Shown here: piece after piece, positions 13,103 to 63,382 of the stretch
Layout of the letters: each line of letters opens with the position of its first letter
Numbering within the stretch: the first letter of the stretch is position 1
NCBI GenBank assembly: GCA_973895155.1
Contig: OZ316899.1
Coordinates: 10,381,135 to 10,445,134 of the forward strand
DNA from: Marsupella aquatica
Lineage: Eukaryota > Plantae > Marchantiophyta
Direction of reading: 5' to 3'
Length of the DNA: 64,000 nt
Translations under genes and position numbers: made by a program
The notes under the pieces: model-generated
What the model was told of the DNA's origin: nothing
Database searches by the model: none
The model's input: only the letters and a program-made list of their open reading frames with translations

Positions 13103-13150
13103 TACCTACGCTTCCGTTCTAACTTCATATCTCACGGCTTAAGAAATGCC

Positions 13151-13167
13151 CCCTCCATCTAGCGCCA
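13151..13167 (-). promoter_or_regulatory. Primer binding site of element B
   Basis: Minus strand TGGCGCTAGATGGAGGG, 4 nt after the 5' LTR; TGGCG-type PBS as in plant non-chromovirus gypsy elements. Confidence 0.8.
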
Positions 13168-13171
13168 AAAA

Positions 13172-16100: not shown

Positions 16101-17834
16101 GTTGTTGTTGCCGATGCCGATTTCTTTTCTTTCTCCAGTAGTTTCAGCAGACTCTGCATGCCTGGTTGCTGCATCGGCAAGTCTTCCTTCCTGGGCCTAA
16201 ACACCTGCTCGATCGTAGGACTAACAGGTGGTTGAGGCTTCTCAGCCAACGGCCTCGGCGTTGGAGCTTCCTCGGGTGCCCTTACCTGCAGGGGAAGTAC
16301 CGGGGCAAAAGTCTGACCTCTGGCATACCGGCACAACAGCGGCATGTGATAGCCAAGCCGCGACACGCTCCCCATGCCGATTACCTGCTGCTCCTCCTTT
16401 AAGATCTTCTTCAATTGGTTGAGGAGGTACCCGTTGTAGTCCCGGCTTGGGTCTGGCCTTTCTGCCAGATAGACCTGTGCCTTGCCGATCTCTGCCCTCG
16501 GCAAGTTACAATGCATGGTCACCCGCAAGAAGTCGATCATCTCTCCTATGTGCGGGTTGGTGCAGGTGTTCCGGAAGAAGCCATTCTTCGTTGATGGCCC
16601 GGGGAACGACCGGAACTCCTTGTCAGGCAAGGTCTTCCTGGTATCAACTTTGGTCTTATTGCCCATCGGCAAGCCAAACACTTCGGCAATCACCTTGGGA
16701 GTAAGATAGAAATCCTTCCCATATATCCTCGTGCAATTGGTCTCGGGTTCCCATGACCCCACGAATTCTAATAGGTCTGACTCCGGTACCTCCGGCTTCA
16801 GCCATGGTAATCTTACAAAGGCCTCCAAGCCGGATCCGGCCATGAAGCCTTGGTACTTCTTGGTCTGCATGGCCGTAAAGCATGCATCCTCCTCCCGTGC
16901 AAAATGTAGTTGCACCTCCACCGGTAGGGTTGCCGCCCAGCCCTTCCAGGTGTCATCCCTGGTTGGAATGGCCTTGATGGGATCGACCTCCTCCTCTTCG
17001 GCTTCTCCCTCTCTCCTGCTCTGTTGCTCGGCTGGCTTCTTTGGTGCCGTCGACCTCGTTCTTTTTGCCGGGGTGGCTTCATCGTTGACGGCTCCCTTCC
17101 TCTTCATCTCTGCTGCCGTGGAGGTTTCTCCTAGCACCGTTGCCTGGGTCCACCTTTCCGTGCTACCCTTTAATTCCCAGTGTATGTCGTTGCAGTTCTT
17201 GATGGCCTCTCGGATGCCGACGACGCTGTCCTTGCAAAACAGAAGATCGTCGAGTTGATTGGAAGTAGGTGTCCACAGGAACTCGTCCTTGATGAGTTCG
17301 CCTCCTAAGAAAGCCGTCTTCTGCAGCTCCCACAATCGAGCGAGCTCCTGCCGTTCTCGAGCTGCCCTTTCTGACTCCTCGTCCTCGTAAGTCTTGATGT
17401 ACTCAGTCGCCCGTTCGAACAGGCATCCCCAGAAATGTGCCGCTTGATTGACGTTGCTCATACCCTCCTTAGGTTGATCGTCGGTATCTACTCTCTCCCC
17501 GAGTGCTTGCCTAAGCAGCTGACAGTAGTTGGCCTCCCGTAGTCGTCTGCCTAGTTCGTGCTCGCAAATGAGCCACTATTTCCTGCAAGCGCTCCTTACC
17601 CCTCTCCTTTGCCGGTCCTTCTTCCCGTTGATCCTTCCTAGCCGCCGACGCTTAACGCGCCCTAACCCTAATCGGGTTTTCACCCTCAGCCTTACCTCCG
17701 GCCTCTGCCCGGGTTCCATGGTTGCCCCTAATTGTTTATATTTTCCTTGTTTTGTCACTATACTAAGGTGTTCCTAGGGTGCCTTCCTGCTTTACCCACT
17801 TAACTGGCCGAGTGATTCCTGTCTAGGCATCACA
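13172..17834 (-). repeat. 5' LTR of element B (4663 bp)
   Basis: Copy of 2285-6947; bounded by the TSD and PBS. Confidence 0.96.
14093..17461 (-). CDS. Intact 1122-aa accessory protein encoded inside the LTR (plant-mobile-domain/Transposase_32-like segment plus long coiled coil)
   Basis: Uninterrupted 3.4-kb ORF. Segment LLEFV...IYGKDFYLTPKVIAEVFGLP resembles plant gypsy extra-ORF domains; E/K/L-rich heptads in the C-terminal half. A homolog is present in element C. Confidence 0.85.
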   Translation of the reverse strand: MSNVNQAAHFWGCLFERATEYIKTYEDEESERAARERQELARLWELQKTAFLGGELIKDEFLWTPTSNQLDDLLFCKDSVVGIREAIKNCNDIHWELKGSTERWTQATVLGETSTAAEMKRKGAVNDEATPAKRTRSTAPKKPAEQQSRREGEAEEEEVDPIKAIPTRDDTWKGWAATLPVEVQLHFAREEDACFTAMQTKKYQGFMAGSGLEAFVRLPWLKPEVPESDLLEFVGSWEPETNCTRIYGKDFYLTPKVIAEVFGLPMGNKTKVDTRKTLPDKEFRSFPGPSTKNGFFRNTCTNPHIGEMIDFLRVTMHCNLPRAEIGKAQVYLAERPDPSRDYNGYLLNQLKKILKEEQQVIGMGSVSRLGYHMPLLCRYARGQTFAPVLPLQVRAPEEAPTPRPLAEKPQPPVSPTIEQVFRPRKEDLPMQQPGMQSLLKLLEKEKKSASATTTTTATATMPDTTTEVGLHRLTRENPFAGDERIRPESKPGVRMYVGTSSSESEAELPEAPTEEEEREKPEIQEVEEAVEDCSHDNSGYGSDHHVPGVRTCGRFVPTLPRVVRGDPNQQSSPESPPPDVAPPSFDGIKQTVQEFQERIKQEEEAALAKEKDLPGGDWPEDIRRLAEKGSKPLATIEEIRRTAWEQRPRWAMPITSTYSTYAKNRAMEYGEMCGELALGIFGEELEVGPFFHREQLEKHQLEEAVALERSKKDEVIRRLRRMEAEIEDLRAAKKAQDELRIKRHELNIMQGQLDAAQADNQNIKDKLTQTQEELADTIKEREKWKQELKNTEEAHITANSRAMAETQRKEWALKGELEKIRRALEQKEVELGKSYQGIMALQQELASLTASFKADLREKDEMLEQTYAKMNQMESVIIAELDKELRATQEEKATLKKELEEAHREQEEAKNELEGARKDLDETQEELEEITRKMENLQRRADNQTERLKKQAAVFKCLAAAGPSPVGTNQLPGVVIAEGQAAPPAPVPEVSGKGKGPAAEPPTKKKRKPSGSRSNTTSQAVVIKEVDPAPTPDRVTAKDPTTLGEGEAEAEGVAEAEAVRVAEAEAVGIAEAGVEAEAEGGPSQAEGELTRSRAGNLSVGGPTAVAAEEVLGASIEDPPPVS

Positions 17835-38390: not shown

Positions 38391-39255
38391 GGGACATATT
38401 TATATGCACTTGGGTCCAACCTAGACATTTGTTCATGTTATATTTGATTTGTTCATGTTTGGTGATATAAAAAAAAGTATTATCTATATTTATATTTGCC
38501 ATTCACTTTTGAATGAGTCATACTCATAACATATGTATTGTATTGTTTTATTGTGATCACTTGTGAATTTTACATGCAACTTTCTATCTAACCTCTGTTG
38601 CTCAATATAACTTTATTTCCTACTTATTCCATAATTTTCATTGTCACCCTTGTGTTTCCCTCCTCCGTGGTACGTCTATCCCTCCTCCTCCCTTCCTCTT
38701 TCTCCTCCCTCCTTCCTCTTCCATTGTACTCCCTCCCTTTTCCATCCTTCATTGTACCTCCCTCCATCCTCCCTCCTGCCCCATCCATATATTGGACCAT
38801 CCACCCTCTTCATTGTCTCACCTCACAATAATCTTAATTTTTAGTTTGCAAACAATTTGCAAAGCTCACAAAATCTCACAGGACTCGCAATTTCTATGAG
38901 GCTTCTCATTTCTCAATATTTCCATACTATACTATTCGCAAACTTGTGATGCAAAATCAATCACAAATTTCATATTCTCACCGTTTTGCAAATCTTCCAT
39001 CCTCCGACATTCTTAAACTTGTCAAACAACTACTATCGCAAAACATTTCAATCCAACCTTCTTTGCAAATATTTACATCAGTTAGTTTCGGAGTCGGCGA
39101 GCAATTTTGGCATCTTCAGAAGGCGCCTTTCCATTTGGCGCGTCTCGGTAAAACTTGCAAAATCACTTACTTTGCAATGTATTAGCGATATAATGCGCTT
39201 CAAGTACTATCTTTGCGATAGGGATAGAATTGCAAATTGCGATGCGGGTTGATTC

Positions 39256-39583
39256 TGTCACACCATTCTAGGTAGTGTTAGAGTGTATCATACTATCTAG
39301 ATCCGTATGTTTGGTATGTGTGCTATATGAGCCGATAAGGTTCCGTCAGGTTTGTGTGAGAGAGTACTTCTCACTTGTGAGGCACTGAAAGGTCATCTTT
39401 CAATGTTGAGCCTTGGAGAGAGAGGAGCTTGAGTGGCTATGGTGGCTGTGAGCTCCGCTTGTGTAACGTTGATTCCTTGAGTAGTGCAAGGTGCGTTGGC
39501 TTGACATACGTGTGTGATCGGATCGGTGCGGGATTGATGGGGTATTGTTGACCGGGATCGTTGTGCCGATTGTATTGAGATTA
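39256..39583 (+). repeat. Split direct repeat A1 of element D (328 bp)
   Basis: Matches 48441-48768 with about six substitutions by eye. Confidence 0.95.
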
Positions 39584-42500
39584 CATTGAAAGATCGCTCG
39601 AACTCTGCTGCTGTACGGACAGAGCTTCGATTGGAGGTTGTGTATTGGCGACGGTTTGTGGTAGTTCGAATCGATCGTGTTGTGTTGATTCGGATCTTAT
39701 TGTTGATATTGTGTTGGAAGATCTATTCTGCCAGGGAGCTATTGTTTAAGCTTTCGACAGTTCCCGAAGGGCTCTGAGATGTGTTGATCGAAGGGCTGAT
39801 TGACAGTAGAGGGATCTATGCCCGTGTTTGTAGATCTGTTGGACAGGGTCCGGACGGTGTAGTCGACCTTGATGCGATCTGTCCCGAGTTGCAATCTGTG
39901 ACAATAGCGATCGGATTTGATAAGGCCGGCTGTGGCACTACTGTTTTGATGAAGGAAACGGAGATCAAACTTTGAATGCTGCGTTTTGCGTCACTACTGT
40001 TTCCATTCGATCATGTGTATGTTGCCGTCGCCAAGCTGCGATTTTGCGTGAAGGGAACCGGCAGCCACAAAGTCAATGTTTTGTGAGGGAAATTGAGTCT
40101 GGATGTTGTGAGATTGAACTGCTATGTTTCCGTCGGACTGCTACTGCAATCTGATTCCGCGAAGGGAACCGAGAGGCAGAAGCTGGATGTTGCCGAATCC
40201 GAAACTCGATGGGCAGAACCTGAATGTTGCCGAATCCGAAATTAACTCGATCCGGCGTAGCGAAGCGTTGCGGGCATGAAGGGCTCACTCTTTGGCTCAT
40301 CTCGGCATTGCGGGCGTGAAGGGCTCATCTAGGCTTTGAGGCTTTGAGGCAACTCGTGGTTACTCGGGACGAGGGGCGTGAGGGCGGAGCAGGAGCGGGC
40401 CAACAAGCCAGCTTGCTGGTACGTGAGGAGTAGTTGCAAGTGCTGCCATTTTGGAGTGGCAGATTTGGTGCATAATGACAAGTGAGAGGTCACCCATCCC
40501 AAAGCTATTCCTCCTCTCATGCGCTTAACTAGCAAGTTTCTATGTGGTGCATTGTACATGCTTCCTTCCACATTTGATGTCCAAGGAATGAGGCCCTCGG
40601 GGTTTTATGCACTTTTGAATTCATCGAGATACTCTGTTTTAGCTAGTTTGCGATGGATTCTTGAATATTTGACGCGGGATTCTTGAGGCCTATTATGAAG
40701 GCCCTACATTGAACTATATACACATTATTTACATGTATTTCTGATTGATTGGTGTGGAGAGTTGTGGTAAATCCTCTTCTTGTTGTTGGATCCTCTCCAC
40801 ACATGCTTCCTGTTTATGCGCCATGTTAGTTTGGCGTGGGCGCTTGATTCTATAGGAGTGATCCGGGTTTGCAACCGGACATTCTAGTTGTGCTACGTAT
40901 TTCTCTCCTGGTGATGTTGGAGTGATGCCCAACACACCATGGTGAGTGCTTGTGTTGTTGACAGGGACAGATTGCCCTTAGGGTTAGCCTATAGATTAGG
41001 TTAGGTTGGTCACCACGGATTCTTCTGGCGCTGCTGGGTTACCCGATGGACGACGGACCGGTTTCACTCGGAATGGGGTGCAGTTTTGGCCAGCGACAGT
41101 GGTAGCAGTCAGCAGCACAGCTTCAGACAACGATTCTGACGAGGACTCTATGAGCAGTTCTCCTCGTCATCAGGTGATTGCACCTTTGTTGTGGGATATG
41201 GAAGAGATGTACGGGGCTACAAAGGGCCCACGACGATACTCTGGTGCAGTTGGCACGATTGATCTGGATGACTTCATCCAGGAGTTTGATACGTGGTGCA
41301 ATATGCAGACATTGCGTAACGCCACGTTGTTTACCCCTTTCATGGCATGGAAGGGATTATTTCAGCATTTGGAGGGGCCACCCATGGATGACTACCATGA
41401 GTTTTGGAAGGCTCATTTGGTTGAGATTGAGGCATGGAGGCAGCATTGGTCGCCTAATTACGTGTCCATCACCTATGGCACTAGTGCGGCTGCCCAACCC
41501 ATTGCCACAGCTGCTGCTGCTTCTTCTAGCAGCACTAGCCAGAGTGGCACACCATCCACCAGCAGCACTCCACCAGCATCCACCGCTACTCCTGCCGGTG
41601 TGATTGTGACAGGAACTGGAGTTGCGCCAGCATTTAACCCTGTGGTGGAATTCTTTGAGGTACTGAAGCAAAACTATCAGGGTGTGAGAACTGATAAGTT
41701 GAAGGGTCTTCAGGAGTTCCAACGCAAGACTGGAGAGAGCCTACGTGAGGCATACACACGTATGCGCAGATTGATCACTGTCACCAAGGGAGTGACAGAG
41801 GCTCAGGCAGTCTAGTTTTGGTATGCAATTCTGGACAGAGAATTGCGACGCAGAGTGAGAGATGTCACTCTGATTAGGGATGCAGATCCCACATTAGCAG
41901 TTGTTTTCACCCTTTCTGAGCGCATTGAGCTCAATATGGTGAATGAGAAGGTGGTGACTTCTGGATTTGCCAAGGAAGCACCAAAGGCTGCATCTACATC
42001 CACACCATAGCCTACTGCACGGAAGAGCCAGAGGGAGAAGCCTACTGCACGAGAGTCTACCAGCCAAAGACCTGTGCCCTCTTATGCTGGACAGCAGTGA
42101 GGATGTTGGACCTGTGGTGGGGATCATGCACAGAGATATTGTCCAGATCATAGAGGATCAGGGGGAGCATCAGCGCCTGATCAGCGACAGTGTGATCACT
42201 GTGGAGCTCCTGGACACACCAAGGATAGGTTTTTCTCACTCCACCCTGAGTTACGGAGAGGAGGATCCCGTACACATGATTAGGGAAGAGGAGGAGGAGG
42301 TAGAGGTGGTGGACGTGGTCGTGGCATGCCACATGCAGGGAGACAGGGAGGTGACGCTGCCCCTACTGTAACCATAGATCCAAAGGATGCTAAGATTGCT
42401 CAATTGGAGCAACAACTAGCTGCCATGGCTAGTTCCCAGGTGAGACCTAATTCTGGTGATGGGGCATCTACATCCTATGGACCTTCCACATCCCATGATC

Positions 42501-43864
42501 CTTCCACATCTTATGGAGCTGATGGAGACCTTGCCACCATGGGATTCATGTGTGGCACTGCACATATTGATGCATCAGCAGCTTTGACACGTGGGGCAGC
42601 CAAAGCTCTTGAGCCCCGAGGAGCAGTAGTGGAGCTAGATCCACAGAGGGGGGATGCACGTCGGCAGACAAAGCTTCCTCAGTCTTTTACATTGTCAGAG
42701 ACAGTTCAGACTGCCTCTATAAACCCGGTTCGGACAAACCCTGGCGTGGGTAAGTTGGCAGAATCAGGTAGTGATGCAGCAGGGATGACAGGTACCCTGC
42801 TGGGGGCGGCTACTACCATGGTACGCACCCCATTATTTTCAGCGACAGACATTCTGAACTTGGGAGTTGGTCCTGCAGAAGTGTTCAGATTGGCAGCTAC
42901 ACTCTGTGAGGACACTCCACTGGTTGCTTCCCATGCAGAAGCAACTTGCAGTGTTGATGTAGTGAAGACCATGCCACCTACTGCTACTAGTGAGACATGG
43001 CATGCAGCAACAGCGAGGTTGGTGGATTTACCAGCACGCCCTGCATTTGAGAGGACTAGGTTTAAACCTAGTGTTGTGTCATTGGATAATCGGAGTGGTA
43101 TCTTCTGATTAGGTGGGCCTTCTGGAGCAGTATACCAGCCAGAGAGAGTGTTACTGGATACTGGTGCTCAACCCTTGATGTTGGGGAAGTCTGCCATACG
43201 TGGATTGGGATTGCGTCCAGAGGATTTGGAGGATTGTCCCTTTCCCATTTAGACTTCATTGGGGGGACCTACACCTACACAGCATATCACCAGGAGACCA
43301 CTTGATTTGAGGATTCAGGAAGGTCATACCACATATAGCTCACAGATACAGGCGCGAGCTATTCTGACTAAGGCAGAGTCATATGATGTGTTGGTGGGAT
43401 GTACAGTGCTCTACCCCATGGGATTTATTCTTGATTTTTGGGAGGAATCAGTGTCATATAGACCTGATTGGCAGTCAGGAGATGCTCGATTGAGAAAATT
43501 GCCAGTGAGATTTAGTGGACCTGTGGGAGGCCCTAAATCCACACCATTGTCTTTGGCAGCATTCAGTGGTGTAATTGCTGGACCTGATGATTTGATTGAG
43601 GGTAATGCGCATGCAGCCGATGTTCCACCATTGGAGGAGTCTCATGAGGAGCACATCATGCGAGGATTACCTGTTGGCAGTGTTGTGCCACCAATGTGGG
43701 GCACTGCACAGGCCTTGCCACAGGCAGCAGCACGATTGGTACATGATGCACGGCGTCATGCTTTTACACCACAGTCAGGAGCAGAGCAGTCTCTTGCAGA
43801 TGGACCTGTGACTCTTTCACCATTGGATACCACTCCTATTGCTTGGCAATATCCACCGAAGGGT

Positions 43865-44806
43865 ATTTGTTTGTTGGATCTTTTTGGTGGGATTAGCACT
43901 GGATTGGCTGTTGTTCTTCAGGCAGGAATTCCTGTGCGTTGTTATTTGTATGTGGAGACAGATGAGACAACACGGAGGGTCTCATTGCGACATGTGGCTA
44001 TGTTGGTGGATAGATATCCACAGTTGCTGCCAGTGGATGCTGTTCGTGGTTATCAGCATGCACTACCTGCTGATATTTCATTGTTGGGGGCGGATCATCT
44101 ACATCGTGTTGGCCCCATTGATTTGGTGATTGCTGGTTGGCCATGTCAGGGCCAATCTAGAGCTGGCATTGGGCATGGACTTCATGATCCACGCTCTGCA
44201 TTGTTTTGGGAGATGTTACGGGTGCTGCATCATCTCCAGCTACATCAGACACAGTCTCCAGCATACATTTTGGAGAATGTGTCATTGTTAGGTGATGATC
44301 GTAGTCGGATTGTTGCCAGTGTTCACCAGGTGAGGTCTTGGATTGGACCTGCTGTGTTATTGGATGCTGCACGTGTGGGTTCTCGTGCACGTCGTCCACG
44401 CTTGTGGTGGACTAATTTGATCCCATGTGAGGTGCTGAAGCGCGCATTTGACAGCATTCCACGCTCACCAGCCTTAGTGGTGGATGATATTTTGGATCCA
44501 GGGCGTCGTGCACAGGGTGTGACCCAACCTGATAGACCTCCATTGGCAATGGTCAATGCAGTTGGGCGCCCACGTTGTGCATTACCCACTCTTGTAAGCC
44601 ACTCTACTTCATATGCATTCAGAGCAGGTGGCCCTGGACTTGTGTGGGACATAGCTCTCCAGCAGTTAGTGGAGCCTACTGCTGATGAGAGAGAGCGTGC
44701 TATGGGATTTTTGACTGGCACCACTGCAGTTGCCTCTGTGTTAGAGGGTTTGTGGCGCCAGGTTCTTGGTCAAGCAATGGACTTGAATTGTTTGACTTGG
44801 ATTATC
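43865..44806 (+). CDS. C5 DNA cytosine methyltransferase domain (DNMT3-like) within the polyprotein
   Basis: Motif I LLDLFGGISTG, II YVETD, IV DLVIAGWPCQGQSRAG, VI YILENV, VIII RARRPRLWWTN, IX ERERAMGF, X RQVLGQAM; no stop inside the domain. Confidence 0.93.
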
Positions 44807-47800
44807 AGCTTGGGAGTAGCTGAATAGTTGCGGATGCGCTCTGCTGGAATTACTGATTGTCCCTTGGTGAGCTTGCGGTCCACTGAGACAGTATTGACCA
44901 CAACTGGGGGCGAGCAGACAGTCAATGGACCTATGGCAGGATTGGCCAAGGCTGGACAGATTGTTGAGCAGGAAGGGACTGCTCAATCTACTGCTAAATA
45001 GCAATCATCGGCTATCTCTTCTACCCTACAAAGAGATATTAGGGATTTGGTGGAGAGTTGGGAACCACAGCTTGGCCCTAAGTTAACAGGGGAGGAGAGA
45101 CGTCGCATGCATCGATTCCTGAAGAGTTATTGGAATTGTTTTGCATTCAGCATGAAGAATTTGGGGACATTGAAGGGCCCTGGTATTCAGATTGAATTGG
45201 CTAGTGATGCGCCAATCTTTCGTAGACCATACCGCTATAGTGACATGGAGAGAGCTCTGATTCAAAGCATAACTCAAGATTTGTTGGAGGCTGGATTGGT
45301 GGAGATTTCATATGGGGAGTATGCATCTGCCACAGTGATGCCAGCCAAGAAGGATGTGCATGGCAATTACACAGATAGGCGCATGTGTGGTGATTACAGA
45401 CCTATTAATCGCCAGACAAAATCTGATCGATATGCCATGCCCACACCTGAGGAGATCTTTGATGCTGTGGGGCATGCAAAGGTTTTGAGTTCATTGGATC
45501 TGAGGGCAGGATACCATCAGCTTCCAATTAGGCATGCTGACAGGTCCAAGACAGCATTCTGGGGGATTGATTCTTATGGCAAAGATCGTTTGTATCAATG
45601 GTTATTCTTACCATTTGGGTTGAAGAATGCACCAGTTGAGTTCCAGAGAGTCATGGATCGAATCCTTGCAGGTTTGGATTTTGTCAGATCTTATATTGAT
45701 GATATTTTGGTCTATTCTTCTACTGTGGAAGAACATCAGCAGCACTTGCAGATTGTGTTGGAGAGATTGAGAGCACATGGGTTGAAGCTCCATCCTGGCA
45801 AGTGTAAGTTCTTCCAAGACCAGATTGAGTATTTGGGCCACACTATATACCCAGGGGGATTGGGTGTACAGCAGACTAAAGTGGAGGCCATTACACAGAT
45901 TCCTCATCCTACTGATGTGAGCAGAGTTCGTGCATTCTTGGGATTGGCGAGCTACTATAGGAGGTATGTTAAAGGATTTAGCCAGCTTGCTAAACCTTTA
46001 ACAATACTCACTAAGTTGGATCAGAAATGGACTTGGGGTGATGACCAAGAGCATGCCTTTCAGGAGTTGAAGCAAAGGTTGGCATCATCCCCTATTTTGA
46101 GAAGACCCATTTCAGGCAGACCATTTCAGCTACACACTGATTGGAGTGGAGTAGGACTTGGAGCAGTGCTGACTCAGAAGGATGATGAGGGGAATGAGTT
46201 TGTTGTGGCTTATGCCAGTAGATCAAACAATGCAGCAGAGGCTAAGTATAGCTCTTATGAGGGAGAGTGTTTGGCAGCAGTGTGGGCTGTTGCACACTTT
46301 CGTTGCTACTTGTTTGATAACCCCTTTACCTTGATCACTGATCATCAGCCTCTTAAGTGGTTAATGGAGTCTGACAAGCTTACAGGGAAGCTTGCACGAT
46401 GGGCATTGTTGTTACAGGAGTATGATTTCCAGGTGGTGCATAGGCCTGGAAAAGTGAACTTGGATGCAGATGGATTAAGCCGCAATCCATGTACCAGTCA
46501 GCAAGATGAGACTGGATCTAGATGGCATGATGAGTCAGATAAGGAGATGGTGCCAGGATGGCATGCATCTGCCTTTCTTTGTTGGGTGCCAACATACAGT
46601 GGATTTGTGGACTCTACCTCATTGGATGGAGTGGATGATGAGTCTTCAGATGTGGATGTTGGTGAGGTAACTTCTGGACAACAAGATATTCACAATGATG
46701 TGAGAGTGTTGGAATATCTGCGCAGTGGTTCTATTGTTGACAGTGTTGATGCCAAGGAACGTGACAGGGTTCTACAGAGAGCCAAGAGATTTCGATGGGA
46801 GGGAAACCATCTTTTGAGAGTACTGCATGATGGTAGGATGTTGGTGGTACCAAAACCATCACAACGAGTACATTTGGTGTGACATGCGCACGAGGAGTTG
46901 GGTCACTTTGGTGTGAAGCGCACTTACAGCTTGCTGCAGACACAGTATTGGTGGCGTGGTATGCACACTCATGTCCAACAGTTGATAGCTAAGTGTGTGG
47001 TATGTGATAGAGTGAGAGCATCATTTAATGCTCCCACTCCCCAGTTGCACCCGTTGCCGATCATGGGTTTGGGATATCGTTGGAGTTTGGATTTTGCTGG
47101 TCCATTACCTCTTACCCAACGTCATAATCAGTATGTTTTGGTCATGGTGGAGCACTTCTCCAAGTGGATTGAGCTAGTGGTGTTGCCAGATAAAGCCAGT
47201 GGAGGAGTTGCTGCTACATTTTTGGATCGTGTACTCAGTCATTTTGGAGCACCAGCTGAGGTGTTGACTGATCAGGGAACTGAGTTCCGTGGAGAGTTTG
47301 AGAGTTTGTGTGAACAAGCTCTGATTGATCATCGTACTACCTCTCGTGATCATCCTGAGGCAGATGGATTAGCTGAGAGAGTTGTGCAAACTGTGAAGAG
47401 AGGATTGCGTAAGTATGGCTTGCAGGTTGGTCATCTGGGAGATTGGGATCTCCAGCTACCTTGGTTAGCTATGGGCTACCGTTTCAGTCGGCAAGCATCA
47501 CTTGCATCCTTCTCACCTTACTTTTTGCTCTATGGTAGAGAGCCAGATTTGCCAACAGCTATTCGTCGTGATGCTGCATCAGTTGTGAACTTAGATGATC
47601 CTGATGTTTGGGTCAAGGTGTGTTCAGAGAGAGCACGGGTATTTCAGCGAGTGATGCCCATGGCTTTTGACAACCTTGCCATTGCCCAACATCGTGATAC
47701 TTTGAGGTATGCCACTATTCGTGGAGGAGGTTACCGTGCAAGCATTCGACGATTTCATCCTGGTGATTATGTTTATTTGCAGCAGACAGCACCCACCACA

Positions 47801-47986
47801 CTTGATGTGACCGCAGGCCGGACAATCTTATGTGTGCGTGAAGTGTTGCCTTCTGGTGTCCTGATGTTGGAGGGACGCGATGGTATGGTTTGGAAGGATC
47901 ATGTGCGCAACTGTGCACCATGTCACCTTCCCAACATTGATGGTACAGTAGATCCAAGCTTGGCACATGTTCATGCTGGCTTGAAA

Positions 47987-48127
47987 TGTATGTTGTGTGG
48001 ATCTGCTCAGGGAGCAGCTACTATGTTGATTTGTGATCAGTGTTCTAGAGGATGGCACATGTCATGTTTGACACCACCATTGCAGGTGATTCCTAGTGGA
48101 TCATGGTTGTGTCCTCAGTGTCGGTGA
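47987..48127 (+). CDS. PHD finger at the integrase C-terminus
   Basis: C4HC3 pattern CMLC...LICDQCSRGWHMSCLTPPL...WLCPQC. Confidence 0.93.
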   Translation, partial: CMLCGSAQGAATMLICDQCSRGWHMSCLTPPLQVIPSGSWLCPQCR

Positions 48128-48300
48128 AGCCGACTAGTTATCATTTGTGTTCTCTTGGCAGATATGGATTGCAGGTAGGTGATCGATGGGGCTCACTTGC
48201 ACCCGGCCTCCTGATCTTCACACCTAAAAAGGTGTATATCAACCTTGTAGAACTCATGGCTAGCTAGAGTTAAGGGACCTTACTCCCAGCTAGGGGGGCG

Positions 48301-48905
48301 ATTGTGGGTTTTGGACATGTGTGGACATGAGTTCCACTTGTATTCCATTCTCTTGTGTTTGTGATGTGGCAGTGTGACTATGTCTGGATGTATGTGACAA
48401 GCGATGTATGTTGTGTAGCGATGTGTATGCGCACGACAGCTGTCACACCATTCTAGGTAGTGTTAGAGTGTATCGTACTATCTAGATCCGTATGTTTGGT
48501 ATGTGTGCTATATGAGCCGATAAGGTTCCGTCAGGTTTGTGTGAGAGGGTACTTCTCACTTGTGAGGCATTGAAAGGTCATCTTTCAATGTTGAGCCTTG
48601 GAGAGAGAGGAGCTTGAGTGGCTATGGTGGCTGTGAGCTCCGCTTGTGTAACGTGGATTCCTTGAGTAGTGCAAGGTGCGTTGGCTTGACATACGTGTGT
48701 GATCGGATCGGTGCAGGATCGATGGGGTATTGTTGACCGGGATCGTTGTGCCGATTGTATTGAGATTATTGTGGGTTTTGGACATGTGTGGACATGAGTT
48801 CCACTTGTATTCCATTCTCTTGTGTTTGTGATGTGGCAGTGTGACTATGTCTGGATGTATGTGACAAGCGATGTATGTTGTGTAGCGATGTGTATGCGCA
48901 CGACA
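48301..48905 (+). repeat. 3' repeat block B1-GC-A2-B2 of element D
   Basis: B (138 bp) occurs twice, identical by eye, flanking A2; PPT-like TAGGGGGGCG at 48291-48300. Confidence 0.95.
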
Positions 48906-48993
48906 ATTCGCAAATTATGCCAAGCATCGCCCATCGGAAATACAAGAGCGTCAACAAAAATATCTTTGCAAAAGTGTTAAATATGTTGTAGTG

Positions 48994-54849: not shown

Positions 54850-55081
54850 TATGTACATTTGGGCAATGAAAAGTACTTTTGGGCTTGAAAAAGTGTACAT
54901 TTAGCCAATGAAAAGTGTACATTTGGGGATAGAAAAGAGTACAATTGGCCTAAAGAGTGTACATTTGGGCAATGAAAAGTGTATATTTGAACATCAAAAT
55001 AGGTACATTTGGCTTTAAAAGTGTACATTTGAGTACATTTGGCCTAGAAAGTGTACATTTGAGTGAAAAAAACATACATTT
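54850..55081. repeat. Degenerate ~20-bp tandem array (AAAAGTGTACATTTGG core), continuing at 60769-60862
   Basis: Repeated core visible on both sides of element E. Confidence 0.85.
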
Positions 55082-55599
55082 TATTCAGAGACAAGAAGAT
55101 GAATAAGAACATACACCAACAACTGGAGGTTCCCTCCAACTTCCATTACCTTATAGTCCCTAAGGACTCGATCTATTACATGCGGTTAGGTTGTTACTAA
55201 CAACCTAAGCTTCGGTTAGTTAGGACTAACTAACTCTACTAACATGACTCGGGTTAGTGTTAACTTCATATTACAACACTCCCCCTTGGTTACTTGAATA
55301 GCATAATAAAGTAACCATATTGAGAGTAATACTAACCCTAGGTGGATTATTTTGGTACCCATAAGGAGAGTGTGGTCTCATCAAAACCCCCCTTCTTTCT
55401 TCTGGGGGAAAGAGTACCACCACTCTGTACATGGCATGGGTCCATATTGAAATGTAGACGTATAGTAGAAATGTGATTCGATGTATGCATTCTTGATAGG
55501 CGAAGGTGAACATGTTAATGCATCGTAAGTGGTAATGGTTGCGGTGTCGTCTATAATCGTGTAGAAAATGGAGTTTAGGGTTTAATCGGATCGTAATGG

Positions 55600-58500
55600 T
55601 CATATCTGCTCTGTGTGCAGTGTGGATAGGCTTCTCATGCCGATGCCGTATGAATGTTCCTTATGCAAAAGCGGTGGTAATGGTTTTGTGAATAAGTCTG
55701 CTCGGTTGTCTCGGCTGGGTATCCATTCGACCTGAATTTGATCACCGTGCTGTTCATGTGTATAGAAGAATTTCGGAGAGATGTGTTTAATTCTGTCACC
55801 TTTTATGAAGCCATGAGCGATTTGGTCAACACAGGGGCGGTTGTCCTCGTAAATAGTAGTAGGCGCTTTAGATTGTTGGCGACCAGTGTGCTTGTGGATG
55901 TGATGGAGCATGCTTCGTAACCATACACATTCTCGGCAGGCTTCATACAAAGCTATGATTTCCGCATGATTAGAAGAGGTTGTGGTGAGTGTTTGCTTGG
56001 AGCTGCGCCACGAAATGGCGGTGCCACCTTGAAGAAAAACGTACCCTGTTTGTGATTTGGCATCTCCAGGGTCAGAGAGGTAGCCCGCATCTGCAAATCC
56101 AATCAATTTGTCTTCAGCATCTTTCGGAAAAAATAGACCAACGTCGACTGTGCCCTTCAGGTATCGAAAAATCCTCTTCAGCCCATTCCAATGGCGGATT
56201 GTTGGCTGAGAACTATGTCTGGCCAAGAGATTTACAGCAAAAGAGATGTCGGGACGAGTCTGATTAGCCAAATACATAAGGGCGCCAATGGCAGAGAGGT
56301 AGGGTTTGTCGGATCCAAGAAGAGGTTCTGTTTCGCCGCGCCTTCTGAACATATCTTTGTTAGTGTCTAAGGAGCGAAGCTCCATTGGTGTGCTGACAGG
56401 GTGGGCTGTTTGCATATTGAACTGTCGTAAAATCTTCTCGGTGTAGGTAGATTGACTAATCAGAATACCATTGTGCAGGTAGTCGAACTGAATGCCGAGG
56501 CAGAAGTTAGGTGGACCAAGGTCCCTCATTTCGAATGTGCCCTTCAGAATACGGAGTGTATGGGCTGTGAGTTGTGGTGTCCCGAATATATTCAGGTCAT
56601 CAACATAGATGGCTATTATGACGAATTCTTCTGCCTCAGATTTCAGGAATAGACAGGGCGCTAGCTCATCATTTATAAATCCCAAAGCTAACATTTCAGC
56701 TTGGAATCGTTTATACCACATCCGGCCACTTTGCTTTAGGCCATACATTGAACGCAAGATTTGTACGGCATATTCCATTTGAGGTCTCTTGCTGCGTGCT
56801 GGAGGCACTTGATGTGTATTATGTGGTGAGTATAGCCCACCAGAGTGGACAGTAGGTCCAGCATTTGTAATTTGCGCAATTAAGGGTTCAGTAGGAACCA
56901 TCTGGATCATGCCAGATCGTAGTGATTGGACTGATATGCCGGATTTCTCCCCCTGAATGTGGAAGGACAATCTATTGAGAAGCTCTGGAGGAGCTTTCAT
57001 GTAAATTTTGGTATCTAGCATGCCATACAGGTAAGCTGTTATTACATCCAGGATGTGCATGACTAGCTTATGTAGTAAAGCAAACGCTATCATGTAGCGG
57101 TATGTAATTGAGTCCATCACTGGAGAATGTGTCAGGTCATAGTCTTGACCTGGGATTTGGGTGTAGCCCTTCGCCACTAGTCTGGCCTTATATCTAACTA
57201 CTTCGCCCTTGGCATTTCTCTTGCGGACGAAGATGAATCTGTAGCCTGTTAGATGGCTGTGAGTAGGAGCTGAAGTGATCGGTCCGAAAACTTGGCGTTT
57301 GATCAGCGAATCAAGTTCAGAGTTAATAGCCGCTTCCCATTGGGGCCAGTCTGGGCGAGATTGACATTCTGTTACTGTTAATGGGTCTGGAGTATCATTA
57401 GTTATCTCTTTTGATATCATATATGCAAATGCATCATCTATGGTAGTGGTTTCTCGTTTCCAGATTTGGCCTGAATGCATATATTGGATGGCTATTTCGT
57501 CATTGTCATTAACTAAAGTTGGTTGAGGTCCAGGGGGTGCAGGTGTGGGACTTGGTATCGTAGGTACAATAGGTGTGGTCCGGCATTGTCTGGGTTGGCT
57601 ATCTTTCGAGCCGAGTGGTCTGCCCCTTTTTGCCCTGGGGAGGGCTTCGGTAGCTAGTCGAGTGGGTTGGATCCGTGCTGGTGCATTGGCAGCGGGTGTT
57701 AAGGATTGAGTGACATTTGCAGCATCATTAAAGGCGTCTGGGAGTTTCTCTAACATTTGTTGAAGGTGGAGGATTTTCTGTACTTCTGCTTCGGTTTGGA
57801 CTGTCCGTGGATCATGCTGGAAGGAGGGTTTTAACTGCCATTGTAAGTCCGGTGTATAGACTGGAGTCTGGTTCTCCATTAATTTGGGGAAATCATCTTC
57901 AATAAAATCACAATCAAGGAACCGAGCCTTGAATAGATCTGCTGTAGATGGTTCTAAATACCGAATAATTGATGGTGAGTCGAATCCTACATAAATCCCC
58001 TGTTGTCTCTGTGGACCCATCTTGGTGCGTTTGGGTCCCAAAATGGGGACCAGGACTTTGCACCCGAAGATGCGAAGGTGAGAGACATTAGGTGGGATTC
58101 CGAACAATAAATGGTGTGGGGTATACTGATTATAGGCAGATGGTCTGTATCGGATGAGGGAGGAGGCGTGAATAATGGCATGACCCCATGCTGATATAGG
58201 TAAATTGGTCTGTAGCAGTAAAGGTCTGGCTATCATCTGTAGTCGCTTGATTAAGGATTCAGCTATTCCATTCTGGAAGTGTACATGGGGTACAGGATAC
58301 TGAACATCAATCCCTGCAGTTTCGCAGTATGTGTCGAATGTCCGGGATGTGAACTCACCGGCATTATCGACTCGAAGGGTGCAGATTGGATGATCTGGAA
58401 ATTGTGATCTGAGTTTCAGTATGTTGGACAGTATCCGAGAAAATACAAGATTTCTGGTTGATAGCAAGGAGACTTGGGACCATTTGGAGGAAGCATCGAT

Positions 58501-60237
58501 GAGTACTAGGAAGTATCTGAAGGGGCCTGATGGGGGGTCTATAGGGCCACACACATCCGCATGTAGGCGTTCAAGGAATCGGGGTATAGCGTGTATGGTT
58601 TTGTCAATGGAGGGGCGTATGATAAGTTTACCCTGGGAACATGCTGTGCAGATCTGTTTACTTTGGGACGGGTGGACGCCAAGTGGGATGCCTACTGTGT
58701 CCTGAATGATTCTGTGGTACATGGTAGTACCTGGATGACCAAGGCGAAGATGCCATCGGTCCGTAAGTGTTCTGGTTGCCTTTTCTGTGTGATATGAATA
58801 TATGTGAGTGATATAGAGGCCAGGGGGATGGTTTAACAGGGTCTCTTTGATTATAAGTCCTGTATTGGTTTCGGCCAAAATGTGCAGTACTTCCTGCCGA
58901 TCTTGTTTGCTGGTATGAATGTGTAGGTTGTTGTCCCGTATATCACGAAAACTTATCAAGTTTCGGGTGGCTGTAGGGGCGTATATGGCTGATCGAATAC
59001 GGATGGTTGTTCCGCCAGGAAATCGGACGATTGCTGGGCCATTGCCCTCTTCAATGTGATTCTGTCCAGTGATGGTTGTGACAGGACGGTTAGATTGAAG
59101 GATCTTAGTGAAGTATTTCTTGTGGCGTAGTATCGAATGAGATGTTCCGCTGTCCACAATACAATGTGTGGGAGCAGGATCGGCAGGGAGGTCGCTTTGT
59201 AAACTAACTGTATGAACCTCAGGTAAAGGTGAAGAGACTACGTAATGGTCAAGGTCATTGGGTGCCTCTAGGAAATTGCCGTGACGTCCGGGGCCTGGTT
59301 GATGCAAATTATCTTGATATAGCTTAACTAAGTGGGCAGGGGCTCGACAAACGTTTTGTGTGTGACCTTTAGTTCCACATCTAAAACAGGTGGGAGTGTC
59401 AGACTTATCTCTGTTATAGGTGAGGTAGTCTCGTCCTCTGCCGCGGACGAAGCTGCGGCCTCCTCCTCTGTTGCCTCTCCGGTTCCAGGTTCGTCCCGGT
59501 GGTGTTTGCCAATCGTTGCTCCTGCCCATGCCCCGGTCGAAACGGCCTCGTCCTCTTCCTGTCGAACGTCCTCTGCTGCGACTGAAACTTCTGCCTCTGC
59601 CTCTGGTGCTGCCTTCTCCTCTGTTGAAGTGGGTCTCGGTCTTGGTTGGTGGTGCAGCACTGCCGGGTGGTCGAGTTTTGGCGTTTTCAAGGAGCAAAAT
59701 CTGGTGCTTTTCTGCTAATAGCATGTAAGCGATTAGTTCAGAATATTTGGTAAAGTTCATATTACGGTATTGTGCTGAGAGTACCAGGTTTGTAGCATGA
59801 AATGTCGATAACGTCTTCTCGATTTGTTCTTCGTCGGATACAGGGTGATCGCACACTGCTAGCTGTGAAGTGATACGAAATAACTCGCTGTTATAATTGG
59901 CAATTGTAGCATGGTCTTGAACTCGTAAGTTGATCCAATCATGGCGTGCTGCAGGGAGTGATATAGTTTTCATGTGATCAAATCGAGATTGTAGGTCCTC
60001 CCAGAGTAAGCGTGGGTTGTATTGATTCAAGTACTGTCGCTTCAATGGGGCTGCTAAGTGGTGACGGATGAGGATGAGGGCCTTTGCCTTCTCTTGAAGA
60101 GTGCATCCAGCGTCTGTGGTGATCGTGTCTTGGAGAGATTTGGAGCTGAGATGTGCTTCAATATCCAGGGACCACGATAAGTAATTGGCCCCATCGATTG
60201 ACAGTGCCTCAAATAAGAGTTTCTCTACGGTAGTCAT
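55600..60237 (-). CDS. copia gag-PR-IN-RT-RNase H polyprotein (1545 aa)
   Basis: LSIDGANYLSW gag start, CFRCGTKGH, IVDSGTSH, WHLRLGHP, RVDNAGEF, YKARLVAKG, IYVDDL, ADAGY, ADLFTK. Confidence 0.97.
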   Translation of the reverse strand: MTTVEKLLFEALSIDGANYLSWSLDIEAHLSSKSLQDTITTDAGCTLQEKAKALILIRHHLAAPLKRQYLNQYNPRLLWEDLQSRFDHMKTISLPAARHDWINLRVQDHATIANYNSELFRITSQLAVCDHPVSDEEQIEKTLSTFHATNLVLSAQYRNMNFTKYSELIAYMLLAEKHQILLLENAKTRPPGSAAPPTKTETHFNRGEGSTRGRGRSFSRSRGRSTGRGRGRFDRGMGRSNDWQTPPGRTWNRRGNRGGGRSFVRGRGRDYLTYNRDKSDTPTCFRCGTKGHTQNVCRAPAHLVKLYQDNLHQPGPGRHGNFLEAPNDLDHYVVSSPLPEVHTVSLQSDLPADPAPTHCIVDSGTSHSILRHKKYFTKILQSNRPVTTITGQNHIEEGNGPAIVRFPGGTTIRIRSAIYAPTATRNLISFRDIRDNNLHIHTSKQDRQEVLHILAETNTGLIIKETLLNHPPGLYITHIYSYHTEKATRTLTDRWHLRLGHPGTTMYHRIIQDTVGIPLGVHPSQSKQICTACSQGKLIIRPSIDKTIHAIPRFLERLHADVCGPIDPPSGPFRYFLVLIDASSKWSQVSLLSTRNLVFSRILSNILKLRSQFPDHPICTLRVDNAGEFTSRTFDTYCETAGIDVQYPVPHVHFQNGIAESLIKRLQMIARPLLLQTNLPISAWGHAIIHASSLIRYRPSAYNQYTPHHLLFGIPPNVSHLRIFGCKVLVPILGPKRTKMGPQRQQGIYVGFDSPSIIRYLEPSTADLFKARFLDCDFIEDDFPKLMENQTPVYTPDLQWQLKPSFQHDPRTVQTEAEVQKILHLQQMLEKLPDAFNDAANVTQSLTPAANAPARIQPTRLATEALPRAKRGRPLGSKDSQPRQCRTTPIVPTIPSPTPAPPGPQPTLVNDNDEIAIQYMHSGQIWKRETTTIDDAFAYMISKEITNDTPDPLTVTECQSRPDWPQWEAAINSELDSLIKRQVFGPITSAPTHSHLTGYRFIFVRKRNAKGEVVRYKARLVAKGYTQIPGQDYDLTHSPVMDSITYRYMIAFALLHKLVMHILDVITAYLYGMLDTKIYMKAPPELLNRLSFHIQGEKSGISVQSLRSGMIQMVPTEPLIAQITNAGPTVHSGGLYSPHNTHQVPPARSKRPQMEYAVQILRSMYGLKQSGRMWYKRFQAEMLALGFINDELAPCLFLKSEAEEFVIIAIYVDDLNIFGTPQLTAHTLRILKGTFEMRDLGPPNFCLGIQFDYLHNGILISQSTYTEKILRQFNMQTAHPVSTPMELRSLDTNKDMFRRRGETEPLLGSDKPYLSAIGALMYLANQTRPDISFAVNLLARHSSQPTIRHWNGLKRIFRYLKGTVDVGLFFPKDAEDKLIGFADAGYLSDPGDAKSQTGYVFLQGGTAISWRSSKQTLTTTSSNHAEIIALYEACRECVWLRSMLHHIHKHTGRQQSKAPTTIYEDNRPCVDQIAHGFIKGDRIKHISPKFFYTHEQHGDQIQVEWIPSRDNRADLFTKPLPPLLHKEHSYGIGMRSLSTLHTEQI

Positions 60238-60557
60238 TGCCTCTATCCAGGGTAGTCTATGAATGTGAACTGTTGGAAAATCAATGTCGAATGTTCAGAA
60301 TGCTATAAATGTCAGATTTAGTGACCTTGAGCATTTTCGTGTGGAGTTCGTGGATGGATGACTGTGGCGCTCTTCCTTCGTAAAAGTGAATGTGGGCGAT
60401 TTGATGGAATGCAAAGTCTCGCTGTAGGAATAATCGTTGATCAATTGGGCGTCGCTTCACAAAGTTCGGAAGAAAAAAAAATTGCGAAGATGAGAGAGGA
60501 TGAGTCGTGGGTAGTGCGTCAGTGAAAAAAAAAAATTCTGTGCTCAGCTTTGGCAGC

Positions 60558-60571
60558 TCGTGCTGATAACG
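60558..60571 (-). promoter_or_regulatory. Half-tRNA-type PBS of element E (tRNA-Ile anticodon arm)
   Basis: Minus strand CGTTATCAGCACGA abuts the 5' LTR; no TGG-type PBS present. Confidence 0.7.
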
Positions 60572-61108
60572 TATTCAGAGACAAGAAGATGAATAAGAAC
60601 ATACACCAACAACTGGAGGTTCCCTCCAACTTCCATTACCTTATAGTCCCTAAGGACTCGATCTATTACATGCGGTTAGGTTGTTACTAACAACCTAAGC
60701 TTCGGTTAGTTAGGACTAACTAACTCTACTAACATGACTCGGGTTAGTGTTAACTTCATATTACAACACATTTGGCTTAAAAAGTGTACATTTAAGTGCA
60801 TTTGGTCTAGAAAGTGTAGCTTTGAGTGCAACAAAGTGTACATTTGGCCTAAAAAGTGTACCAACTCTTATTATAATCATTTAAAAGAAAGGAATGAATA
60901 GAAAAATATTTTTAATTATGCAAAAAAAGCAAACATTCATATTCATAACGATCAAAAGTTTAGAAAATGAGGAGATAGTATAACTAACACTCAATGGCAT
61001 GGTCTCACATTAAAACTATTAAAATAGTAAATAACTAGTAGGTACTTGTTACTATCTAAGTAACTATCTATTTAATAATTATTATAGCTTCGCAAGTAAC
61101 AACTAAGT

Positions 61109-63382
61109 CTACTTGTCCATCCTTTGGAGATAACTTTGGACAGTTTGTAGAACATTTCGGGGAATCTTCAAACCTCTGCCCGCCATGTTTTCTTCTTTCA
61201 TTCCAGATTTAAAACCATACATTGCAAAATTTGCATACTGCCAATGTTGAGCGTTCTCACCAAACCCTGGATCTCGTTCCCATGTCTTAGTGGACATGAA
61301 GCAGGTTAGATACTGTGCACTCTCAGTCACATCAAGTTTAGAGTGTTTAGGCCTCCACCATTCGACTGGAAACATTGGAGCATATTGTTGAGGCAGAGGA
61401 GGGTTTGTTGGAGATGTAGTTGGGACTTCATGCTTAGGGTCAACCGAACCCAAAGCTCTCACCAACCAGAAATGACCTCCACCATTTTTATTCTCCCAGT
61501 CATCCTCGGGTCGAAGAAATACAAAGTTCCCTTCACAAATATCCTGTAGGGGAATCCACCGTCCTTGTTCTCTCTCAGCTCGAGATCCAACAAATGGTGC
61601 CGCTTGATCTTCCATCTCTTCCAAGACCTCATTTTGAAGAGCCGTCATCTCCGCATTCTCCTCATCTTCACTTGGAGGACCACTTTGTTCCGGTTGGTTG
61701 ACCTTGTAACCAGTGCCATGGTTAGTCTTAGACCAAAATCCGTTTTTCAAGGGAAATTGAGTACTCCCCCCCCCCCCTTCTAGTGCAAGCCCATTTGTCA
61801 ACAACTCCACAATTCTCTCCCAATATTTCACAAGAGGAAATCTTTCCTTATATGCTATAGATGTCTCATCAGTGCAACTCCTTCTCAAAAAATAAAGGTA
61901 CTTGGTAAGAAATGGGATAATCTCTTCAGATTTTTTGTGTATCTCTCCAATGGATTTAGCTAAGGGCTCTCCACTAGGTAAAAGAAGAGAATTTGTTGTT
62001 AGATCTGTTGCCCAAATGCACCTTCCACCAACTGGAGCCCAAGCTTGCTTTACATGGGACTTATACTAAAATATTGGTACATTATCTCTCATAGAGAAAA
62101 GAAATGATACAGGTTTTGAGTGACCTTGAATATCTTTAACTTTGAAAGTTTGAAGATATTCTTTGTAAGATGCAACTTCTTGTATCAATCTGGGAACTGG
62201 ATGAATGCTCTCACATTCCCAAACCTCTGCCATAAGAGCAAGGAGAGTTGCAACTTCCTTGTGCTGAACTTGATATGATACCTTCGAAAAGAGTGCATCA
62301 ACATCTTCGTGCGTATGACCAACCATAAGAAAAGACATTTGAACAGTTTCAAATACTCCTCTACTCACAAGCTCACTACAAAATGCCATGACAGTCTGGT
62401 TTTTGTTATCCTTTGCTGAGTTATCCATTTGCAATGTTAGGTGCCAACGCAAGGGCTTGAAAGATGGACTGCCTTGTTCCCCATGCATGTCCCCTCCTTG
62501 ATCCTCACCATGTTGGGTGGAGACCGTCTCCGTCTGACTCTCAACTGCATCTTCAGAACCAATATACCTATTCATTGGAATACTCTTTGGTTCCAAATAT
62601 CCCTTAAAAAATGCATCAAAGTCAAGAAGGGCTTGAAAGAAAGGTCTATGAGGTTCCAAATAAAGGCCATCCAACATGTCACCTGTCTTGTCTCCATTGT
62701 ACTCTTCAAGGTCTCGAAGACACTTAGCCAAGGATGTCACCGTGAAATCGGCATCTCCTGGCCAAAGGCCAGTGACACTAAAGTGTGCATAGACTCCTGG
62801 ATCCCTTCCGTGGGTCAACATCCCTGTGAGAGCAATAGGTAGCGGCATCCCATGACCCGAAAGTGATTTAGGAGTACTGACCATTTTTGGAATCCACGTC
62901 TTTGCTTGATCCTTCTTGTCGTGAATGATGCAAAGATATTCCCCTGGATGTTGCTTAGCCAACACTCGATGAGCATAGTAAACATATCTACGTGACATTT
63001 GCTCACGAAGATGTTGCGCTCGTTTTTCTTCAATTTCAGCATGTTCTTTTTTCCTTCTTTCTCGCATCAAACTATCTTTGTATTCACAACAAAGAGTACA
63101 CTTGGCAAATGCACCATCTTTATGGAAACTGAAGTTTGCGAATGATTTGCTCCAAATCTTGTATAGAGTATTCTCTGTAACTGGAGGAAGCCCCTCTTCC
63201 TTCATCTTTGTTCTCACATCTTCCAAAATCTCCAGCTTCTTGTAACATGCTGGAAGACGATATTCAGTGGAGTCTGTCCCATGAGCCCCAGCATAAGGTA
63301 TATGAGGCATGGGCTCTGCATTTCGAGTCAAAAAATCCTCCAACAGAGCTCGTGCATGCAAGGTATTTGACCTTGTTTTCAT
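61109..63382 (-). pseudogene. Sola-like DD(E/D) transposase with one in-frame TAG at 62066
   Basis: AKCTLC zinc motif, QMDNSAKDNKN, FLMVGHTHEDVDALFS. ORFs 62066..63382 and 61109..61888 are in frame across a stop-free linker. Superfamily call is from motif memory only. Confidence 0.68.

Follow-up and report, generated by a model that had tools for sequence, protein, structure and literature searches.

Split direct repeats, self-priming sites and a conserved palindrome in a liverwort Gypsy-DNMT3 element: a layout consistent with integration from a head-to-tail LTR intermediate

A stretch of 64,000 nt from the liverwort Marsupella aquatica (contig OZ316899.1; hereafter the window, to which all coordinates refer) contains a Gypsy-type retroelement at 39256-48905 whose direct repeats are split between its two ends. 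Repeats were located by repeat finding and self-BLAST, and junctions were read from the sequence (Table 1). The order A1...B1-GC-A2-B2 was present at every coordinate checked. The 5' end carries A alone and the 3' end carries B-GC-A-B, so there are no identical full long terminal repeats (LTRs) at both ends, and the same was found in all relatives examined. The outer ends are TGTC...GACA, bracketed by a 4-bp duplication: at the left boundary the flank ...ATTC is followed by the A1 start TGTCACACC, and at the right boundary the GACA of B2 is followed by ATTC. The B1/A2 joint consists of GACA, the spacer GC and TGTC, and is the sole occurrence of GACAGCTGTC within the window. The A2|B2 joint reads GAGATT-A-TTGTGGG, the single A being common to both repeats, and the purine tract AGGGGGGCG lies directly 5' of ATTGTGGG, the start of B1. 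A1 and A2 are 98.2% identical (six differing positions, five of them transitions, three at CpG), and B1 and B2 are 100% identical over 138 bp.

This repeat layout, the TG...CA ends and the ATTC duplication had been described in an earlier sequence-only reading of the window, made without database searches, and each of them was confirmed by the present analysis. The same reading had argued from a second copy, D2, that the A-only 5' end is no one-off truncation. D2 is inverted, diverged and truncated at its 3' side, where another repeat interrupts it at 49877; its 5' end is likewise A only, opening at TGTCACACC with unrelated DNA outside, as that argument held.

Table 1. Features of the split-repeat element and its second copy in the window.
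Feature	Position	Strand	Remarks
Left target-site duplication ATTC	39252..39255	+	Junction sequence
A1	39256-39583	+	328 bp; begins with integrase end TGTCA; in reverse-transcription terms, predicted 3' part of U3, then R-U5
Putative self-primer arm ATCTTTCAATGT, probable RNA 5' end	39395..39406	+	Complementary to 39583-39594
Predicted U5 stem, GTTGAGCC with GGCTTGAC	39405-39413 with 39498-39505		Alignment A1 columns 21-29 with 138-146; beside the primer/primer-binding-site duplex
Putative self-priming primer-binding site ACATTGAAAGAT	39583..39594	+	First base is the shared A end/B start base
gag-like open stretch	41000..41812	+	Weak Retrotrans_gag match, E 0.059; frameshifts and stops after it
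pol piece, DNMT3-like C5 cytosine methyltransferase	43253..44824	+	Pfam PF00145; PC and ENV motifs
pol piece, reverse transcriptase and RNase H	45002..46879	+	Pfam RVT_1, RT_RNaseH
pol piece, H2C2 zinc finger, DDE integrase core, C-terminal PHD finger	46883..48124	+	Pfam Integrase_H2C2, rve
Polypurine tract AGGGGGGCG	48292..48300	+	Wider context AGCTAGGGGGGCG
B1	48301-48438	+	138 bp; predicted 5' part of U3; terminates with integrase end CGACA
Palindrome GACA-GC-TGTC	48435..48444	none	Right end, 2-bp spacer, left end
A2	48441-48768	+	328 bp
B2	48768-48905	+	138 bp; fused to A2 by the predicted exact U5-end/U3-start junction
Right target-site duplication ATTC	48906..48909	+	Junction sequence
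D2, second copy, diverged, 3'-truncated, inverted	52908 down to 49877	-	73-86% identical to main element

The pol region is broken in this copy, and profile searches were made piece by piece. The open stretches from 41000 to 48125 all lie in one frame, with in-frame stops at 43106, 44825 and 46880 and frameshifts near 41813-42284; the window copy is therefore a dead element. For gag and protease, this degenerate copy gave the one weak Retrotrans_gag match and no match to a protease model. The order within pol is DNMT3-like methyltransferase, reverse transcriptase, RNase H and integrase-PHD. Among solved structures the methyltransferase is nearest to DNMT3A/B/C, with DNMT3A as its best match, and its PC and ENV motifs align with them; the closest solved relatives of the integrase are those of Ty3 and prototype foamy virus (PFV), with the D, D and E residues aligned. 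Among open reading frames (ORFs) of 100 aa or more, neither strand of the element gave a Phage_integrase match. The sequence-only reading had called this a Gypsy element with a DDE integrase; the Pfam domains and the alignment of the catalytic residues agree with that call, and none of the ORFs encodes a tyrosine recombinase. The element has the reverse transcriptase-RNase H-integrase order of Ty3/Gypsy elements with H2C2 and DDE domains, TG...CA termini and a duplication of the 4-5 bp class (here 4 bp), and it carries the DNMT3-like methyltransferase inside pol that defines Gypsy-DNMT3 elements. On these sequence features it is a member of the streptophyte Gypsy-DNMT3 lineage.

The PHD finger at the integrase C-terminus occupies the place of the chromodomain in chromoviruses, and it is kept in relatives from Haematococcus and Klebsormidium to liverworts. 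This position suggests targeting by a histone mark. The combination of a self-encoded DNMT3 with an integrase PHD finger merits attention.

Relatives were assembled by fetching genomic loci for homologous proteins and by scanning metagenome contigs for the junction motif, about 0.3 Mb in total. The metagenome scan gave four loci, every one of a Sphagnum family. The resulting sample comprises 14 insertions, five of them from one Sphagnum family, and 12 are informative on the mirror form of the layout (A-B-GC-A-internal-B). Identity to the window integrase-PHD region is 80-83% in Calypogeia, Marchantia and Riccia, 62% in Sphagnum, 54-56% in Klebsormidium nitens and 48% in Haematococcus. A block of polypurine tract (PPT)-B-GC-A-B with GACAGCTGTC at the B|A joint was found in K. 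nitens or Klebsormidium-like loci (L003, L004 and L016), in Riccia (L005), in Calypogeia (L011) and in Sphagnum (L006, L008 and L010, and L009 with a deletion). In L007 the contig end falls inside A2, and the Klebsormidium contigs end inside the element, leaving the 5' end out of view there. In all, 10 loci show the A...B-A-B type of structure; they represent five taxa and come from independent assemblies. Across families B measures 71-138 bp and A 327-340 bp; A1/A2 and B1/B2 are 94.5-100% alike within each copy, and the repeats diverge greatly between families.

Ordinary B+A LTRs at both ends with 5-bp duplications in most full-length copies were the outcome that the sequence-only reading had set against its own proposal. 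Every visible 5' end is A-only (7/7: the window copy, D2, L001, L006, L007, L011 and L013), and all four copies with both ends visible are flanked by perfect 4-bp duplications (ATTC in the window, ATCT in L006, CCCC in L001 and AGGT in L011). The number of repeat units at the 3' end varies. L001 (1701-11423) is A...B without an extra unit, and L013 is perhaps likewise; L011 (Calypogeia fissa, 15454-16429) has one unit more than the usual form, A...B-A-B-A-B. Unequal exchange between the short repeats could yield such a series of zero, one and two extra units, as could circles holding another number of LTRs. Four loci were uninformative. Those from Marchantia, L002 and L012, are fragmentary, and one of the two falls within an annotated gene model; L014 from Haematococcus and L015, of a different Calypogeia family, consist of tandem arrays or of nests formed by other repeats. 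The gene model is Mp_7g09570 on Marchantia polymorpha chromosome 7 (L002, 10001-12825), annotated as a PHD-domain gene; it derives from the element family. It keeps the DNMT and integrase-PHD parts; the reverse transcriptase part is gone and there are no terminal repeats.

The repeat boundaries were compared with the sites at which reverse transcription would start. The 12 nt that begin with the last base of A1 (39583-39594) are a perfect complement of 39395-39406 within A. Perfect complements lie at homologous positions in D2 (14 nt), Calypogeia (12 nt) and Sphagnum (17 nt), and their sequences differ. The putative primer arm sits about 140-165 nt into A, and in shuffled-A controls 0-1 of 5000 trials matched the observed length of complement. 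RNAalifold, given seven sequences, found the primer/primer-binding-site helix unprompted; 11 of 42 predicted pairs are changed on both sides, mostly in that helix. It also predicted the adjacent U5 stem of GTTGAGCC and GGCTTGAC. This stem is near-invariant across the seven sequences, which come from three genera, and is reminiscent of Tf1's U5-IR stem. Sphagnum and Calypogeia have a TATA-like box some 26-31 nt upstream of the arm, so the arm is probably the extreme 5' end of the RNA. A tRNA-type primer-binding site was considered and rejected: no TGG-type site lies 3' of A1, and self-priming accounts for the site. Directly 5' of the primer arm (39380-39406), A holds an imperfect copy of the primer-binding site, as it does in D2, L006, L011 and A2 of L003. 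With this copy the arm can also fold into a local hairpin, and such an alternative pairing might regulate priming.

At the other repeat, the window, Sphagnum and Riccia share the polypurine context AGCTAGGGGGGCG unchanged, the tract of Calypogeia is near-identical, and Klebsormidium has AGGAGGGG; B starts immediately after the polypurine tract in every case. With a polypurine tract abutting B and a self-priming site abutting A, the boundaries support B-GC-A as the LTR predicted for reverse transcription. The sequence-only reading had proposed B+A as the true LTR, and the two conserved sites back it. In the window, in Sphagnum and in Calypogeia, the A|B joint links the base preceding the primer-binding site to the one that follows the polypurine tract. 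The A shared at the window A2|B2 joint is the first base of B; Calypogeia shares no base and its joint is still exact. Given the predicted priming sites at the start of B and the end of A, A2|B2 is exactly the junction of the last U5 base with the first U3 base. The predicted cDNA ends (the start of B and the end of A) differ from the integrated ends (the start of A and the end of B). Read this way, an integrated copy corresponds to the two-LTR cDNA in circularly permuted form, opened at the upstream LTR's palindrome with loss of the GC and with a 4-bp duplication of the target. The B|GC|A palindrome, which is kept from Klebsormidium to liverworts, marks the integrated ends.

Part of this has a precedent in the alga Klebsormidium nitens. 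KnitGypsy-Dnmt3 was described by de Mendoza et al. (2018), and their Fig. 4c legend gives it a DIRS-like repeat structure with Gypsy domains (PMC5890265). The sequence-only reading knew of no such layout in a gypsy element, a claim that does not survive this legend. The main text and supplement of that paper hold no analysis of primer site, junction, duplication length or mechanism; a 2026 preprint mentions "streptophytes (Gypsy-DNMT3)" with the structure undiscussed, and full-text literature searches returned no description of the layout besides PMC5890265. KnitGypsy-Dnmt3 and the window element share a DNMT3 in a Gypsy pol and the order A-coding-B-A-B, and K. nitens L003 and L004 share PPT-B-GACA GC TGTC-A-B. 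The two differ in their integrases, since the window protein is far closer to those of Calypogeia, Marchantia and Riccia than to that of K. nitens. What appears to be new here is that the family extends to liverworts and mosses, together with the self-priming site and the exact U5|U3 joint, the 2-bp-spacer palindrome kept across roughly the whole streptophyte span, and the uniform 4-bp duplication.

The priming arrangement resembles that of Tf1/sushi and Tcn1 elements, which also have no tRNA-type primer-binding site, an inferred RNA start that is complementary to a site beside U5, and a conserved U5 stem alongside. For plants, existing predictions of self-priming concern the Tcn1 clade in mosses and club mosses (PMC6317226). 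The Tf1/sushi and Tcn1 elements keep ordinary LTRs and bear a chromodomain, whereas the present ones would combine self-priming with permuted repeats and a PHD finger.

In the textbook scheme, an LTR element inserts a linear cDNA by its two ends. The use of circle junctions by integrase in vivo has been debated since the 1980s, and circles are usually regarded as dead ends. In bacterial insertion sequences of the IS3, IS30 and IS256 types, the circle junction, with abutted inverted repeats and a 2-3 bp spacer, is the transposase substrate. These are DNA transposons without reverse transcription, and the resemblance to the present element is one of logic only. The retroviral integrases of PFV and HIV-1 cleave palindromic LTR-LTR junctions (PMC1180852, PMC1905944), and circles are capable of feeding integration (PMC4372172). 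There, as would be the case here, a DDE integrase cuts the internal palindrome of two abutted ends. In the retroviral circles the palindrome is the LTR-LTR junction and its use is a side path at most, whereas here each LTR contains it, with a 2-bp spacer, and its use would be obligatory.

The account we somewhat favor is that a head-to-tail LTR intermediate is opened by integrase at one internal palindrome. The sequence-only reading had likewise proposed a 2-LTR circle cut by integrase at an internal site. Reverse transcription would be set up as in Tf1, with self-priming at the end of A and plus-strand synthesis from the polypurine tract at B. The U5 end of the cDNA would then be joined to the U3 start in each cycle, by blunt ligation to a 2-LTR circle or by a template jump of reverse transcriptase, and this joining would create the A|B joint. 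At the palindrome of the upstream LTR, the DDE integrase would nick after CA on both strands; with the 2-bp spacer, the two nicks would leave two recessed CA-3'OH ends with 5'-GC overhangs, like 3'-processed retroviral ends. Insertion of these ends would give A-internal-B-GC-A-B. This form alone would retain R at its 3' end, and it alone should therefore yield new copies.

Two observations argue that the A|B joint is re-made in each cycle and not inherited. A1/A2 and B1/B2 are nearly identical within a copy despite the divergence between families, as expected if both are remade every cycle. The joint is precise in nine of the 10 loci that show it. In the exception, L009, A lacks its end and B about 80 nt of its start, as resection before ligation would give, and this too argues for a joint formed anew. 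B1-versus-B2 differences common to the Sphagnum copies were sought, and no consistent pattern was seen in this small sample; the near-identity within copies is a weaker argument than such differences would have given. Strand transfers, RNA read-through into B2 and fold-back priming were each considered as a source of the joint; none yields it without the joining of two cDNA ends.

A number of points weigh against the favored account. Circle formation and internal cleavage are both inferred steps, and the window copy is itself disrupted by stops and frameshifts. If a 2-LTR circle, with its two identical palindromes, were opened at random, the mirror form should be as frequent as the observed one, yet no mirror form was seen among the 12 informative insertions. 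Random opening also predicts many A-internal-B and solo A-B products; neither solo A-B nor mirror forms were found among all fetched loci, which amount to about 0.3 Mb. Mirror insertions, having no R at the 3' end, would be dead on arrival, yet they should remain visible in genomes. Nothing in the local sequence distinguishes the two palindromes, yet a single product is found. The model therefore lacks some directional step; one possible candidate is that integrase favors the palindrome near the short B side (B and A differ in length as given above). The A...B-only copies (L001 and perhaps L013) and L011 can equally be explained by unequal exchange after insertion. The sample also counts here, with 14 insertions of which five come from a single Sphagnum family.

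The missing direction would be supplied if the plus strand, on reaching the U5 end, jumped across to the start of U3 at the opposite cDNA end and recopied B up to the palindrome. The product would be a nicked, directional intermediate in which the upstream palindrome alone is distinguished for integrase. Such a jump would produce the observed form exclusively, in keeping with the lack of mirror insertions, and it fits both the precise joints and the fact that B is always short relative to A. It is a purely inferred step, no sequence feature that halts synthesis at the palindrome has been identified, and the imprecise joint of L009 looks more like end resection before ligation. We consider it unlikely that the jump is the correct description. 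Slightly less probable again is a restoration of ends in the style of DIRS and Ngaro elements. The members of the DIRS order (Ngaro, PAT-like and VIPER elements) share with the present element the order A1...B1-A2-B2 and an internal junction with the same sequence as the outer ends put together. That junction is thought to restore the ends there, as shown for the internal complementary region (ICR) of DIRS-1 (PMC7192593). Applied here, an RNA running from inside A1 into B2 would carry the A2|B2 joint from copy to copy, and B1-GC-A2 would template the rebuilding of the missing outer A1/B2, giving a B2-GC-A1 junction or GC-extended ends for integrase to process. An exclusive A...B-A-B form would follow. 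On the other hand, the A and B boundaries match the primer-binding site and the polypurine tract to the base, which this scheme does not require and LTR-type reverse transcription predicts. With the primer-binding site after A1 and the polypurine tract before B1, standard strand transfers would never copy B2, and B1 and B2 are near-identical over their full length in every family, arguing for a common template. The DIRS order has a tyrosine recombinase and no staggered-cut duplication, in contrast to the DDE integrase, TG...CA ends, 4-bp duplications, Gypsy order of reverse transcriptase, RNase H and integrase, and absence of a recombinase found here.

The odd look of a single copy, with nothing further to recommend it, might also suggest an ordinary LTR or tyrosine-recombinase element that was rearranged after insertion or misassembled, its 5' B deleted and its 3' block duplicated. 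The structure recurs in 10 loci from five taxa in independent assemblies, and perfect 4-bp duplications flank the outer repeats A1 and B2 of the window copy, L006 and L011, as they do A and the lone B of L001; this recurrence and the flanking duplications refute such an origin, whose probability we regard as negligible. There is no recombinase gene, and the other Gypsy and Copia elements of the window have normal LTRs, so the odd layout belongs to the family and not to the assembly.

Returning to the head-to-tail intermediate, we put forward a broader proposal about which we are marginally more doubtful than confident: that this lineage is the first retroelement whose DDE integrase obligatorily uses the internal palindrome of a head-to-tail (2-LTR-circle-type) cDNA, that every copy is a circular permutation, and that split repeats are a signature of circle-type integration generally and not of tyrosine recombinases. 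In this plant and algal lineage, the primer sites, repeat boundaries and integrated ends jointly imply that the ends recognized by integrase are never those made by reverse transcriptase. If the proposed route is right, the elements would offer a natural system for integrase cleavage of abutted ends, and no tyrosine recombinase would be needed to explain the A...B-A-B layout, a point of relevance to how DIRS/Ngaro elements arose from Gypsy-like ancestors. It would also be a warning to annotation pipelines, which will take A1 and A2 for LTRs and misplace the 3' boundary.

Two of the other elements in the window are those with ordinary LTRs. A Gypsy element on the minus strand (2277-17834) has very long LTRs of 4671 bp (2277-6947 and 13164-17834) that are 99.7% identical. 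They hold a long sense ORF with no Pfam match. In one LTR it spans 14093-17461 (1122 aa), and in the other it is broken into parts of 471 and 597 aa. A Copia element, also on the minus strand (55082-60769), has 198-bp LTRs that are 100% identical and an uninterrupted gag-pol ORF of 1545 aa (55600-60237), and from its sequence it looks recently active. Adjoining its LTR is a short array of 22/64-nt repeats with GTACATTTGG-type units (54851-55072). A 438-aa ORF at 62066-63382 on the minus strand has a strong match to DUF7869 (E 2.8e-42).

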